Origin: Sphaerodactylus townsendi
Lineage: Eukaryota
Direction: 5' to 3'
DNA length: 64,000 nt
Assembly (NCBI RefSeq): GCF_021028975.2
Contig: NC_059434.1
Span: forward strand, 60,698,001-60,762,000
This document shows, in pieces, positions 4,701-24,854 of the stretch. Under the pieces are notes generated by a model. The model worked only from the letters and a program-made list of their open reading frames with translations. It searched no databases and had not been told where the DNA came from. The translations under genes were made by a program, and so were the position numbers. Every line of letters starts with the position of its first letter. The stretch's first letter is position 1.

Positions 4701-5299
4701 CACAGAGACGTCAAGGAGAGAAAAGTCTGCCTCTAAGCAGGCAGATGGGGGGGAAACGCGCCATCCCTCCCGAGAGAGGTACACCTGGATGGAAGCCACG
4801 CTCAGGTGGGGAGGCTGGGCGGTTGTTAGGGCCAGAACGTTCTGTCCATGCCCAGAAGCGGTCTCTGTCTTACTTCTTAACTAGCACAGTGTTGGGTCGA
4901 CAATATGCAGAGGAGGGGGTGGGAACGGTGTTTCCAAACAGGCACTCTCAACGGCTGTGTGGGGCCGCCGGGGTGAAATGCGTTGGATTGCACTGCAATC
5001 TTAGGCTGTGTTCCTACGATCTAAACCCAGTGATTTCAATGTGGTTTATACAAGAAGAACCCTGCGCAGGATTGCACGGTTGCTGTTCAGCAAGGGAGGC
5101 AGACCGTTGTGTATGCATATTTAGAGAAATCCAGCTGCGATTCGAAGTTACTCCCATGCATAGACGGAGGTACAGATCTTAGCGAAAACAGTTGTGGAGG
5201 AGGGGGGAAGAACAGTGAAATAAATTTGGGAACAAGACTGAGAATGCCCTCGGTCCACCTTCTCGCAGCTGCTTTGGAAAAGTTCATGTTTATTTTTAA

Positions 5300-17702: not shown

Positions 17703-18015
17703 GATGTTACTCTGATTAAGAGCCCGAGCTTGTGACCCTTACTTGAAACATGGTGATTGTTGTGGCCTCTGCATCCAGGCATCACACTACACTAGCGTTT
17801 ATTGCAACCATGAAATAAACCAGTTTAGAGTGATGTCCAAATGCAGCCCACCCTTCTGCGAAAGGAAGGATTTCCATCCATGGGAGAAAATTTTCTCCCC
17901 TCCCCACAGCAGCCAAAATTTACCCAAAATGGTGCACCTGCAGGAACAATATCTTAGGGGACAGCTTGAACTGCAGTGGTTGAAAGTAGGCAAGACAGTT
18001 TTGCTCCATGGGTGG

Positions 18016-18535
18016 TGTTCTGCTCCCCAGGTGGTTATCTAGGTGCCCTGCACCCGGCCAAAGCAGAATGTAAGACTCACGGACTCAGTTAACAGTTCAA
18101 TACTTAAAGCTTTAATTGTAACAATGTTGACAGACCCTGACTCCTCCCGGGTCTAACTAAATAAAGGTTACTTTGTTGCAGAAACTTTCTGGAGTCTGGA
18201 ATTTATTGTAAATACTGTGAGACTATAACATCTATAACTGTTTAACTTAAATACTGTGAATCTATAACATCTTTGACTGTCTAACTTGTTGCTGTCACCC
18301 AGCTTCCGTTGGCACCTAACTGCTGCTGTCACTCAGCTTCCGTTGGCCCCTAACTGCCAAATCAGACAGGTTGCTGGGTAATAACTGCCGTAGAACACCA
18401 GCCCTAGGGCTTCTTAAAGGGACAGAACTAAATTCGGTTCCCTCCCACTGAATACTGTACAAAACATAGCTAAACCCATACTAACTGTGGGGAAACTAAA
18501 GGGGAAATAAACAAAGGCTCTGTGGGGGCATGACA
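18016..18535 (-). repeat. 3' LTR (520 bp)
   Basis: Matches 23929-24434 except for a 14-bp indel (ATAACTGTTTAACT) and one substitution that I could find by eye. Confidence 0.97.
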
Positions 18536-18544
18536 CTCCCGCCT
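18536..18544 (-). other. Polypurine tract
   Basis: AGGCGGGAG directly precedes TGTCATG of the 3' LTR on the minus strand. Confidence 0.85.
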
Positions 18545-18746
18545 AAAACTTCCTCTGGAAGTTTTACCTTTATCAACTTCCATTAACTATACTTAACTAT
18601 TCTTACTGTACTACTCTTAATAACTATCTATCCCTAATACATAATATCAACTATGCTAACTGTAAACTTCTATGCTAACTATAACTATAAACTTCTAACA
18701 ATCTTGATTGCAGAATTCAAACTGCTTGTGGTTCACTGCTTGTGGT

Positions 18747-19697
18747 TCAACGTTCAGGAACTCTGAATAAAGAAGAATCTCCATCTTCATTCTTAAAATC
18801 AGGGTTAAAGTCATTAAGAAGCAGAAAATGGACGTTTTCCACAAGACATTTATCCACCGCTACAAAGAGAGGAGTCTCTCCTTTCATGTTTGTCTGTTGC
18901 CACTGGCTAGGTGTGGTGATCTTACGTATTTGATCCACTCTATTACTCACATATACGTAAAATCTACGATGTATATTGTTAATATATCCTAGCACTACTT
19001 TGCTATCTGTATAGAGCACTACATCCTGAAAGGACAAGTCCAATTCCCTTTGGATAATTTCTAAAAGTTGTGTGGCTAGCACTGCGGCACAAAGTTCAAG
19101 GCGGGGTATGGTATGGCCCTGCCTCGGTGCTAGCTTAGCCTTTCCTAAAATAAAACCTAAGTACACTTGATCACCTCGGATCACTCTAAGATAGGCCACT
19201 GCAGCAATCGCTTGAACTGAAGCATCTGAAAATATATGGAGTTGCAGATGTTCTGAACTGGGTGAAATGAACCCATAACTCCTTGGGACACTGACTTGTT
19301 CCAAAGCTGAAAGAGTTGACCTCCAGGGTTCCCATTTGGACCTTTCAAGGTCTGACAAAGGTTGATCCCAATCTTTAATGTCCTGAGTTAGCTCTCTCAG
19401 CAAGCATTTACCTTGAATAATGACTGGTGCTGCAAACCCAAGGGGATCGAAAATACTGTTGATTGTGGATAGCACTCCTCTACGTGTGCAGCTCTTCTTT
19501 GAGTCTGGAACTTGAAAGGTAAACTCATCCTTTTTAACTTTCCAGCACAAACCCAAACTTCTTTGTATTGTTGAGGACTCCTGTCCTAATTCTAAAGTTT
19601 CTATTTCCTTTACTTTATCTTCTTCGGGAAAGGCTTGCAGCACTTCTGGACTATTCGAAACAATTTTGTGTAATCTTATGTTGGCGTTGGCCAACAT
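18747..19697 (-). CDS. BEL/Pao Pol fragment: RT C-terminus/tether and RNase H (Pao peptidase A17 family), ending in an ankyrin repeat instead of integrase
   Basis: [60 protein letters not shown] motifs. Confidence 0.93.
18762..18902 (-). pseudogene. ASB14: Captured host ankyrin-repeat fragment, ASB14-like, fused in frame to Pol
   Basis: [46 protein letters not shown] fits the ankyrin consensus. It closely parallels my recollection of human ASB14 ([46 protein letters not shown]). The paralog assignment needs BLAST. Confidence 0.8.
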
Positions 19698-20400
19698 ATG
19701 CTGAGTTTTGTTTGAGAAGATTGATTGCTTCTTGCGGGGTGGGTGTAGATTTTAAAGCATCATCTACATAAAAGTCTCTGTGAACAAATTGACTCACTTC
19801 TGATCCATATTGCTGCTCTAAGAGTTTTGCAGTCTTCTTAAGTCCATAGTTTGCAATAGCTGGTGAGGGGCTGTTTCCAAAAACATGAACACACATTCTG
19901 TACTCTTGCACCTCTGACATCTGATATGGATCCTTAAACCACAGAAAACGAAGATAATTTCTATGGTCTTTTCTGACCCAAAAGGAATAGAACATTTGTT
20001 GAATATCTGCCATAATTGCAACAGCTTCCTTTCTAAAACGCAACAGTACTCCGATAAGATTGTTAATTAAATCCGGTCCTGTCAGCAGAACTCTATTAAG
20101 AGATGTGCCATTAAATAATGCACTAGAATCAAACACCACTCGTACCTTATGTGGCTTCTGGGTGATAGACTCCAAAAAAATGGTAAATACCAGCATTCTT
20201 GATGGTCTTCAATGTCAGGCGCTTTTCGGCATGGCCCTTCTCTATCATGGTGTTAATGAAGGCAATAACATCCTCCTTTAACTGTGGTTTTTTTTTCCAT
20301 GTTTCTTTGGAGTGCTTTCCAACGTTACAGTGCCATGAAACGATTATTTGGTAACTTGTCCCTGGGTTCATTGAAGGGTAAAGGTCGCGATCCAATTTCC
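19651..20400 (-). pseudogene. BEL/Pao reverse transcriptase (frameshifted)
   Basis: [43 protein letters not shown]. Confidence 0.95.
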
Positions 20401-22170: not shown

Positions 22171-23656
22171 AGAAAACTTCTGAATGCCTCTTGTCTGCTA
22201 AATCTCTTCTAGGATTTCTGGAAAGGGTAGCTTTCAAAACATCTGACAAATTTGGGATGTCAGGTTGCATAATGGGATTTGTTGCCTGATGATGCGGAGT
22301 AGAGTATAACTGTGAAGCTGATACTCCAGGTACAACTGTGTCTTCAGGAGACTTCTGCTCCTGTCTAAAAACTGTAGAGTCGAAATTGGGCATCCCAACT
22401 GGATTTGTAAAGGTTTTCCTCCCCTCATTCTGTTCATTTGCTAACTGACTTTGCTTGTTGATTACTTGGGGCAGCTCATTTTGTGGTACTGTCTGCTGAC
22501 TCACCACTACTGGCGCAACCATGCTATGCTGTGGTTGGAACTGGACCATGGATTGCTGCACTCTGGACATCTGGGACATTAGTTCTGCTGATTCTGCAGC
22601 TGCCAGATGTTCTGTCACTCTGAATTCTTCCGAATCAGCAGTCACTTCTCCAAAGTTGGATGACTGTTGGATTAAATAGGAAGATACCTTCATCATAGGG
22701 TCTTCTTCCTCTATTTCCTCAGAGCGGAAGGTAAATAAACTCTCTTTAAGGCCTTGCTCCAAAACTTGAGCTCTCGTTATCAGCTTTTCTGCCTTTGCTC
22801 TTTGTTTTAGTGTTGACAAGGCTGCTTCTACTTTTGCTTGTCGAGCCTCTTCCTGAGCTTTCAACTGTGCCTGATGGGCCGCTTCCTGGGCTTTCAAATG
22901 AGCTTGTTCTTCAATGATTTCTTCTTTTCGTTTTAAGAAATCTACTTGTTTTGCAGCCGCCGCTGCATCAGCTTTGGCTTCCAGGATCTTCATTTCCATA
23001 GCCAATCTTTGGGAACGACAAGAGGCACTGCTATAATTTGAGCCTGACTTAGTGCTTCTTGTTCTGTGGGATGTGTGGGAAGACGAGGTTTTAGTTGCAG
23101 ATTTACTGCCACACTTGCTTGGCACTTCAGGTGTAACCTTTCTTGGAATGTGAGGTGACATTCCTCTTCCTATTCCTCTGCGTGGGGATGCAGTGTCTAC
23201 AGTTGGTTTGGTGGATTGTTCTTCTTGCGCGTGCTGGATCTCTGATTGTTGACTTGCTTGCAACCCCTGCAACTTGCTGGATAAACCACACATAATGTTG
23301 TTAAAGAAGTTTGCCTTTTCTCTCTGATCCTTCTCCATCTTTGTCTTGATATTCAAGGCTTCTGATGTATTCATACGCTCTAGGAGGGAAATCGTATCTC
23401 TTAGCTGACCTTTCCATAAAAGGTACCGTTGTTGTAAGGTCTCCTTACAACTTAATATTTCTTCTTCTTGTACAAGGCATTTTCCAGATTGATAAATTGC
23501 TAGGAGGTCTTGCCACGCCTTAGAGCATTTGAGCTGCAATACATTCACCTGATCTTGCAAAGATGCTAACATTTTGGTAGTGGGCTTTTTATTTCTAGCA
23601 TTGCTTTGTGAAATAGAGCTTGTTGGCTCTGAGTGAGTTTCTTCTCTTTCTTGCAT
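22169..23656 (-). CDS. N-terminal part of Gag (coiled-coil, Ser-rich and Gln-rich)
   Basis: Open frame of ~495 codons from the first ATG at 23656; Ser-rich tract then an A/E/K/Q-rich helix, ending in the RRDL motif before a frameshift into the Gag core. Confidence 0.85.
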   Translation of the reverse strand: MQEREETHSEPTSSISQSNARNKKPTTKMLASLQDQVNVLQLKCSKAWQDLLAIYQSGKCLVQEEEILSCKETLQQRYLLWKGQLRDTISLLERMNTSEALNIKTKMEKDQREKANFFNNIMCGLSSKLQGLQASQQSEIQHAQEEQSTKPTVDTASPRRGIGRGMSPHIPRKVTPEVPSKCGSKSATKTSSSHTSHRTRSTKSGSNYSSASCRSQRLAMEMKILEAKADAAAAAKQVDFLKRKEEIIEEQAHLKAQEAAHQAQLKAQEEARQAKVEAALSTLKQRAKAEKLITRAQVLEQGLKESLFTFRSEEIEEEDPMMKVSSYLIQQSSNFGEVTADSEEFRVTEHLAAAESAELMSQMSRVQQSMVQFQPQHSMVAPVVVSQQTVPQNELPQVINKQSQLANEQNEGRKTFTNPVGMPNFDSTVFRQEQKSPEDTVVPGVSASQLYSTPHHQATNPIMQPDIPNLSDVLKATLSRNPRRDLADKRHSEVF

Positions 23657-23812
23657 TGCCGGTGCTCCTAGCAAAGAAGACTTCAACTTTCCTATGCCCA
23701 GCTTCTTTAGGGCTTATAGGAACCAATCTCTCTCTTCTGCCAGTGCTCCTAGCAAAGAAGACTTCAACTTTCCTATGCCCAGCTTCTTTAGGGCTTATAG
23801 GAACCAATCTCT
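23657..23812. repeat. Tandem duplication with 81-bp period in the 5' leader
   Basis: 23657-23731 and 23738-23812 match with one mismatch. Confidence 0.95.
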
Positions 23813-23928: not shown

Positions 23929-24434
23929 TGTTCTGCTCCCCAGGTGGTTATCTAGGTGCCCTGCACCCGGCCAAAGCAGAATGTAAGACTCACGGACTCA
24001 GTTAACAGTTCAATACTTAAAGCTTTAATTGTAACAATGTTGACAGACCCTGACTCCTCCCGGGTCTAACTAAATAAAGGTTACTTTGTTGCAGAAACTT
24101 TCTGGAGTCTGGAATTTATTGTAAATACTGTGAGACTATAACATCTTAAATACTGTGAATCTATAACATCTTTGACTGTCTAACTTGTTGCTGTCACCCA
24201 GCTTCCGTTGGCACCTAACTGCTGCTGTCACCCAGCTTCCGTTGGCCCCTAACTGCCAAATCAGACAGGTTGCTGGGTAATAACTGCCGTAGAACACCAG
24301 CCCTAGGGCTTCTTAAAGGGACAGAACTAAATTCGGTTCCCTCCCACTGAATACTGTACAAAACATAGCTAAACCCATACTAACTGTGGGGAAACTAAAG
24401 GGGAAATAAACAAAGGCTCTGTGGGGGCATGACA
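23929..24434 (-). repeat. 5' LTR (506 bp)
   Basis: Begins TGTCATG and ends GAACA on the minus strand; AATAAA at 24120-24115; short internal tandem repeat at ~24189-24255. Confidence 0.97.
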
Positions 24435-24854
24435 GGTGGAAATCCTTCTGTCTGAAACACAGGTGTCTCTCGGGAAAATGTAGCCTGGTTCAAAATCTGA
24501 GTTTTCTGCCCCCCTCTCCTGTATAGGCAGCTGCCCCCCCCCCCCCACGACCAAACAATGTTTTTTTTGCGCCAGGTCTTAAAGACAGTGTACGGACCCA
24601 AGAGGAAGGAGGAGGGGTGTGGGGGCGATGTTCCACCCCCTACATGACTAAATGGCCACAGCCCGGGGACATTTGAAGATCTGTCTAGGAGACCTAGGTT
24701 CACATTTTTACTTTGCAGTAAAGCTTGTTTGGTGACCTTGGACCAGTCATACTCACCAGTCATTTCTCTACTTATAGGTTCCAATCTTCAGATTAGACCT
24801 GGAGTTCTCTAGAAATTGCAGCTTCCCAGACTGCAGAAATCAATTCACCTAGGG

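Follow-up and report, generated by a model that had tools for sequence, protein, structure and literature searches.

The locus analysed here raises the question of how the pol gene of a BEL/Pao retrotransposon can end in an ankyrin repeat, and by which route this repeat reached its present position. The window, a stretch of 64,000 nt from the genome of the gecko Sphaerodactylus townsendi, contains on its minus strand a Pol frame that runs through RNase H to the residues SQW, continues without an intervening stop into 46 ankyrin-repeat residues ending in DGDSSLFR, and terminates with VPER*. The initial annotation had interpreted this arrangement as the replacement of the integrase by a fragment captured in frame from a host ASB14 transcript or exon. 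As set out below, we consider it likely both that this S. townsendi element, a non-autonomous LTR retrotransposon of the BEL/Pao type, was inserted recently and that it belongs to a family already carrying spliced ASB14 mRNA as cargo.

The element spans window positions 24434-18016 (6,419 nt, approximately 6.4 kb), and all features described below are read on the minus strand. It is bounded by a 5′-LTR of 506 nt (23929-24434) with the ends TGT...ACA and by a 3′-LTR of 520 nt (18016-18535); comparison of the pair revealed one substitution and one 14-nt indel. The target-site duplication, CCACC in the minus-strand reading, is located at 24435-24439 and is identical to the five nucleotides adjoining the 3′-LTR at 18011-18015. 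Between the LTRs we identified a gag-like open frame of 514 codons (22172-23713), which resembles the N-terminus of the chimeric gene model P0153 and yielded no Pfam match, a reverse transcriptase segment (19654-20208; Pfam RVT_1, E 7.6e-6) in a frame that differs from that of the RNase H segment, and a last open Pol stretch (18904-19751) comprising the Pao-specific domain PF05380 (E 5e-46) and RNase H and ending in TTPSQW. The segment derived from ASB14 exon 4 follows at 18766-18903 and encodes a single ankyrin repeat and the beginning of a second. The minus-strand ORF from 19697 to 18747 comprises 316 aa, and the open stretch from 19751 to 18750 comprises 334 codons. The TGA codon that closes the sequence RVPER* (18747-18749) lies within a 14-nt tandem duplication, approximately 190-210 nt upstream of the purine-rich tract that adjoins the 3′-LTR, the latter starting at 18535. 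This tract belongs to the 3′ internal region between the cargo and the LTR (18536-18760), which is joined to exon 4 in many copies.

Gag, reverse transcriptase, the PF05380 domain and RNase H are arranged in the order usual for BEL/Pao elements, the LTRs have TG...CA ends, and the 5-bp target-site duplication is within the BEL/Pao range of 4-6 bp. Moreover, the best protein matches of the element pol all carry PF05380. Relatives with a continuous pol frame align across three frames of the element, with shifts near 20160 and 19690; a continuous gag-pol frame is not present, pol being spread over several frames.

Several short repeats were observed within the element. A unit of 81 nt is present twice in tandem (98% alike) at 23657-23812, covering the leader and the start of the gag-like frame, and adds 27 in-frame codons upstream of the first Met. 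Both LTRs contain short internal repeats, at 18209-18357 and 24122-24256, with units of 39 or 25 nt and of 34 nt, and the 14-nt difference between the LTRs falls inside this repeat region. DNA contigs and RNA reads showed forms of the LTR repeat going back 35, 36 or 78 nt, indicating that the repeat number varies among family copies. Likewise, a 14-nt unit is repeated twice at 18721-18749, across the stop codon at which the chimeric frame ends. Deletions of 4 nt at 18739-18744 occur in other copies, and hence the last codons, VPER*, are not constant in the element family.

In BEL/Pao relatives, the tryptophan that ends the shared stretch is followed by the integrase N-terminus (QW.YV, four variable residues, NPAD) in nearly all rows examined; of 120 relatives surveyed for this motif, 74 reach at least 40 residues past the Trp, and 25 of these 74 were inspected. 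Reading of the ORF and alignment to these relatives revealed neither the NPAD motif nor an integrase after RNase H in the element, and the alignments to continuous relatives end at 18897-18900. In line with the initial annotation, the locus represents a BEL/Pao element without integrase, as judged by PF05380, the LTRs, the target-site duplication and the missing NPAD motif after the Trp, and the frame leading from RNase H through 46 residues to VPER* near the purine-rich tract was read correctly. Given the absence of the integrase, the element is a non-autonomous derivative. A protein search for pol relatives retrieved only distant ones from frogs, fish and molluscs, with at most 56% identity, and no family members with integrase.

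The ankyrin tail stems from the host. Positions 18903-18766 match exon 4 of the S. townsendi ASB14 gene at 133 of 138 nt (96.4% DNA identity; nucleotides 4728-4865 of the host locus), and the tail corresponds to residues 109-154 of the ASB14 protein XP_048343935. The match may extend to 18761, the last base of the exon, and then comprises 136 of 143 nt. The host locus used for this comparison (L004; GCA_021028975.2, CM037616.2:54138212-54163784) includes the ASB14 gene and 2 kb on each side. It did not match the rest of the element, nor does anything else in the window resemble it. The 3′ region at 18536-18760 was considered as a further part of ASB14 and dismissed, as it has no match to the gene or the 2 kb on either side. 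The host gene resides at a separate locus, at about 54.1 Mb of CM037616.2, whereas the tail sits between the element LTRs; the notion that the tail is flanking host DNA was discarded, as it lies within the LTRs and the target-site duplication. Host-derived sequence is therefore found inside an LTR-bounded element, away from its locus of origin.

The same exon is present with introns on both sides in geckos other than S. townsendi. In three other contigs the 138 nt form an exon with an acceptor and a GT donor, flanked by introns, at 83-91% nucleotide identity (91, 85 and 83% in L001, L003 and L002, respectively). At the protein level, the 52-residue tail scores as ankyrin repeats in a phmmer search against PDB chains (E 5.7e-9 to ankyrin-1/2); as a single repeat, it reached 15.4 bits with Pfam Ank, under the cut-off of 21.1. 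Among proteins of 174-553 aa, the tail matched only the S. townsendi ASB14-like protein (88%) and possum ASB14 (65%). Against 1.84 billion representatives it gave short single-stretch matches with 61-87% identity, three of them leading to the intron-flanked contigs L001-L003 and one cluster being named ASB14-like/DNAH12-like; DNAH12 is the neighbour of ASB14. The ASB14 part of the S. townsendi ASB14-like protein, P0153, was likewise compared with protein sequences, and its best 120 listed matches are nearly all named ASB14, a few being without a name or DNAH12-like; they include the S. townsendi ASB14 XP_048343935 (94%). The assignment to ASB14 is by nucleotide identity and by the names of these matches. 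An ORF of 210 aa from Logan, P0395, which falls into the ASB14 cluster, was examined as a candidate for an element-borne copy and rejected, as it is the host exon with intron read-in.

The tail is orthologous to ASB14 and does not comprise its full architecture of multiple repeats and a SOCS box: the SOCS box is absent, and one repeat plus 6-7 residues of the next are all that is present. The tail is thus an ASB14-derived fragment, not an ASB14 gene. The proposal that the insert represents one ankyrin repeat and the start of the next from ASB14 is borne out by the match to host exon 4, and the ankyrin positions pointed out at the outset as altered (G to D, P to S) do differ from this exon. In total, five of the seven nucleotide differences are non-synonymous, and the residues affected include the conserved Gly and Pro of the ankyrin repeat. 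The initial annotation had suggested comparing the ends of the insert with the exon boundaries. The host exon begins 16 nt upstream of the match, which places the 5′ breakpoint inside the exon and not at its border. The 3′ end of the match coincides with the exon 4 donor site or lies 5 nt before it, the last five letters agreeing at three of five positions.

One of the variable positions deserves separate mention. At 18784, corresponding to L004:4846, the S. townsendi host gene encodes Ala (NEAGD), while the element, ASB14 of Paroedura picta and one run contig encode Asp; two further contigs read Glu. The element here agrees with other geckos, so that the change occurred in the host gene, either after the capture or independently of it.

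Contigs from three DNA runs, together with the raw RNA reads from a fourth, were compared with window positions 17850-19650. In run X1, the depth of unique flank k-mers is 21-27, and contig depth served as a rough proxy for copy number. A contig of depth 1695, about 80-fold that of the flank, extends over 18531-18841, from the LTR border across the 3′ region to exon 4. Its only departures from the window are position 18819 and an indel at 18739-44, and it contains the five non-host bases of the window at 18811, 18784, 18773, 18765 and 18763. Many copies thus have the same join between exon 4 and the 3′ region together with the non-host bases of the window. A second X1 contig, of depth 492 (about 23-fold), covers pol and shares 99.6% identity with the window from 19650 to 18898, after which the reading frame goes on with HYVASELNPAD, the canonical integrase start. 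ASB14-bearing sequence is therefore deeper in the runs than pol-bearing sequence.

Moreover, contigs in two runs follow exon 4 to 18900/18903 and then continue directly into the spliced end of exon 3, encoding ITLK|ASDPTVW. The host ASB14 gene has an intron between exons 3 and 4, and the host protein reads ASDSTVW, as opposed to ASDPTVW in these contigs and in P0153. The latter, a S. townsendi gene model (UniProt A0ACB8FX93), consists of two gag stretches of the element family followed by the ASB14 5′ leader and many exons, its ASB14 part being 94% identical to the host protein. P0153 looks like an element-borne ASB14 that was annotated as a host gene. As to the loss of introns, the window copy contains a single exon fragment, the overlapping DNA contigs contain the spliced exon 3/exon 4 junction, and P0153 comprises multiple exons. 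Taken together, the deep contig with the shared join and bases, the spliced exon 3/4 contigs and the gag-ASB14 model suggest that ASB14 was probably cargo of the element family before the window copy arose. Sequence derived from ASB14 seems to have reached tens of copies as the family spread. The window copy is the one full family copy that was read, and the presumed parental order, integrase and then ASB14, draws on P0153, a gene prediction. Exact-sequence look-ups of the 316-aa ORF of the window, of P0153 and of P0082 found no contig.

The k-mer depth of the LTR (18016-18535) in X1 amounts to 20,000-48,000, compared with 21-27 for the flank and about 500-2,000 for the internal parts, which suggests very many solo LTRs or related families with the same LTR. 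A megablast search of the element against a phage collection, which is irrelevant to the question, gave no match.

We then return to the join itself. The pol copies read CAG TGG CAT and exon 4 reads GTG TGG CAA, and the element pol (QW|HY) and ASB14 exon 4 (VW|QQ) share the six letters GTGGCA at 18898-18903. The Trp codon has the same phase in both partners, and the product consequently runs in frame into the 46 ASB14 residues. The comparison with the integrase-bearing pol contig, as suggested initially, thus uncovered a breakpoint microhomology of 6 nt. Of the earlier proposal that the fragment was captured in frame at a shared TGG codon (18902-18900), the frame and the shared letters hold, the latter extended to GTGGCA, while a host transcript was probably not the donor: the contig at about 80-fold flank depth shares the 3′ join and the five bases, spliced exon 3 lies upstream of exon 4 in other contigs, and P0153 fuses gag of the family to an ASB14 copy. 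As pol is frameshifted upstream, the significance of the in-frame fusion is weakened.

With regard to the two chimeric junctions, the join of exon 4 to the 3′ region is found in a high-depth contig, while the RNase H|exon 4 join is rare in contigs. None of the listed contigs bridges 18903/18904, with the proviso that contigs drop rare paths. The window base at 18906, located 3 nt from the join, is missing from the pol-to-integrase contigs. Two of the three DNA runs show only the pol-to-integrase contig at this position, and in the third run a contig with a depth of about 6 (flank about 11) has the window base. At the outer border, a run contig spans the join of flank and LTR (17850-18044) with zero differences from the window. 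The RNase H|exon 4 join is rare and probably unique, and its support at the read level is partial.

Two further observations concern the flank. Reads of RNA run X17 fit only a 33-nt piece of it (17892-17924), with fixed unlike sequence on both sides and constant differences at 17904 and 17909; this is probably a short piece shared with an expressed repeat or a transcript from elsewhere. In run X6, which has a different organism label, a flank contig matches 17850-18012 with six differences, and the match ends 4 nt before the LTR while the contig continues, so that the insertion may be absent from this organism. Over the tail, the RNA run has few reads per bin, on both strands, and its organism label is unlike that of the two DNA runs with an exact flank match. 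The RNA reads therefore say nothing firm on expression of the chimera.

How the join was formed can be judged from these data. Had reverse transcriptase switched from element RNA to the host ASB14 mRNA or pre-mRNA at the shared Trp codon and then back, the microhomology and a 3′ end close to the exon 4 donor would be in keeping with an mRNA template. However, such a fresh capture does not explain why the five non-host bases and the 3′ join are common to the contig at about 80-fold flank depth, and near-identical LTRs would predict a tail almost identical to the host, whereas 7 of 143 bases differ. It also needs two switches, where the alternative needs one, and we regard it as unlikely. It is similarly improbable, if on other grounds, that the assembler joined a pol-bearing and a cargo-bearing family copy and that no such molecule exists. 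Each half indeed agrees with abundant family members at about 99% or more, no listed contig bridges 18903/18904, and two runs have only the integrase-continuing contig at 18906; but assemblers do not join on six shared letters, and absence from contigs is weak evidence where rare paths get dropped. Furthermore, the matched LTRs with a perfect 5-bp target-site duplication, the contig that spans flank and LTR without differences, and the window-private base at 18906, found at roughly single-copy depth in one run, all speak against an artefact of assembly.

The RNase H-ankyrin protein or the ASB14 cargo could be a selected fusion or accessory module that serves the element. Lacking the SOCS box, it might be a decoy for the ubiquitin-ligase adaptor ASB14, or it might give rise to small RNAs directed at ASB14. 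There are precedents of retroelements that keep host cargo (PMC4299795, PMC7785250), and the greater depth of ASB14-bearing over pol-bearing sequence in the runs would agree with such a role; nevertheless, the upstream pol is frameshifted, a single ankyrin repeat is left, and most of the differences from the host alter a residue, including the conserved Gly and Pro. Moreover, the RNA reads over the tail are few and come from a run with an organism label other than that of the exact-flank runs. We assign very little probability to this explanation. Hardly credible is an ankyrin repeat native to the transposon lineage or derived from another mobile element, which has nothing in its favour beyond the general abundance of ankyrin repeats. 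It is refuted by the 96% DNA identity to an intron-flanked host exon with orthologues throughout the tetrapods, and by the integrase that BEL/Pao relatives have at this position.

We therefore favour as the likely origin of the window copy a microhomology-mediated deletion or recombination within an ASB14-carrying BEL/Pao family. A BEL/Pao lineage would have acquired spliced host ASB14 mRNA and then spread. During a later round of reverse transcription, a template switch between two GTGGCA sites would have occurred, either as a jump within one cargo-bearing RNA or between co-packaged pol-bearing and cargo-bearing RNAs. This jump would have removed the sequence separating the Trp codon that closes RNase H from the one located 16 nt inside exon 4, and with it the integrase, as well as exons 1-3 if the parent contained integrase followed by ASB14. 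Finally, integrase from another copy would have inserted the product in trans; mobilisation in trans is suggested by the perfect target-site duplication and the near-identical LTRs in an element without integrase. The position of the 3′ join, which coincides with the exon 4 donor or lies no more than 5 nt away from it, is not predicted by a plain deletion and may point to a splicing step in the history of the family. As pol is already frameshifted, the in-frame tail is unlikely to be made as part of a polyprotein, and the ankyrin tail is probably a passenger without function.

That LTR retroelements can take up host mRNAs is well established for retroviruses. Like acute transforming retroviruses, the window element has host sequence in place of part of an element gene (in these viruses, of pol or env), an in-frame join at short homology and a dependence on a helper; unlike them, it is an endogenous element of the germ line without an oncogene, and its join is secondary in an already chimeric lineage. 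It resembles autonomous BEL/Pao elements (Belpaoviridae) in its LTRs, the 5-bp target-site duplication, and gag, reverse transcriptase, PF05380 and RNase H in the usual order, and differs from them in its frameshifted pol and in having a host exon fragment, not an integrase, after RNase H. A parallel in reptiles is provided by crocodilian endogenous retroviruses that captured the host mRNAs for KIT-ligand and nectin3 (Chong et al. 2014, PMC4299795). There, too, an LTR retroelement contains an intron-less host coding sequence between its LTRs and was amplified as a lineage, in one case with the cargo at the expense of an element gene. However, the crocodilian elements are retroviruses of the ERV4 type with whole host ORFs under purifying selection, whereas the gecko copy has a BEL/Pao carrier and part of one exon, with nothing pointing to selection.

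Our literature search, covering BEL/Pao with ankyrin, ASB14 with retrotransposon, and S. townsendi transposable elements, retrieved no report of such a case, and no host mRNA capture reported for a vertebrate BEL/Pao element or for ASB14. The carrier here is a vertebrate BEL/Pao element, observed in the form of a probable secondary deletion derivative. The window copy shows how a chimera is remodelled, in that a join at a 6-nt microhomology removed the integrase. In addition, element-borne ASB14 copies already contaminate gene annotation, as exemplified by the gag-ASB14 model UniProt A0ACB8FX93. In Drosophila, the element TART-A carries part of nxf2 (PMC7785250) and, like the gecko element, combines a retrotransposon with a piece of a host gene, to which small RNAs might link it; TART belongs to the non-LTR elements, and its cargo targets a gene of the piRNA pathway, whereas the gecko element is of the LTR type and known from DNA sequence. 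There is a slim chance that the ASB14 cargo of the gecko family was kept because it helps the element, either through small RNAs from tens of sense copies that cross-target ASB14 or through ASB14 fragments without a SOCS box that would be decoys of a cullin-5 ligase adaptor. If so, the family would be the vertebrate BEL/Pao counterpart of TART-A and nxf2.
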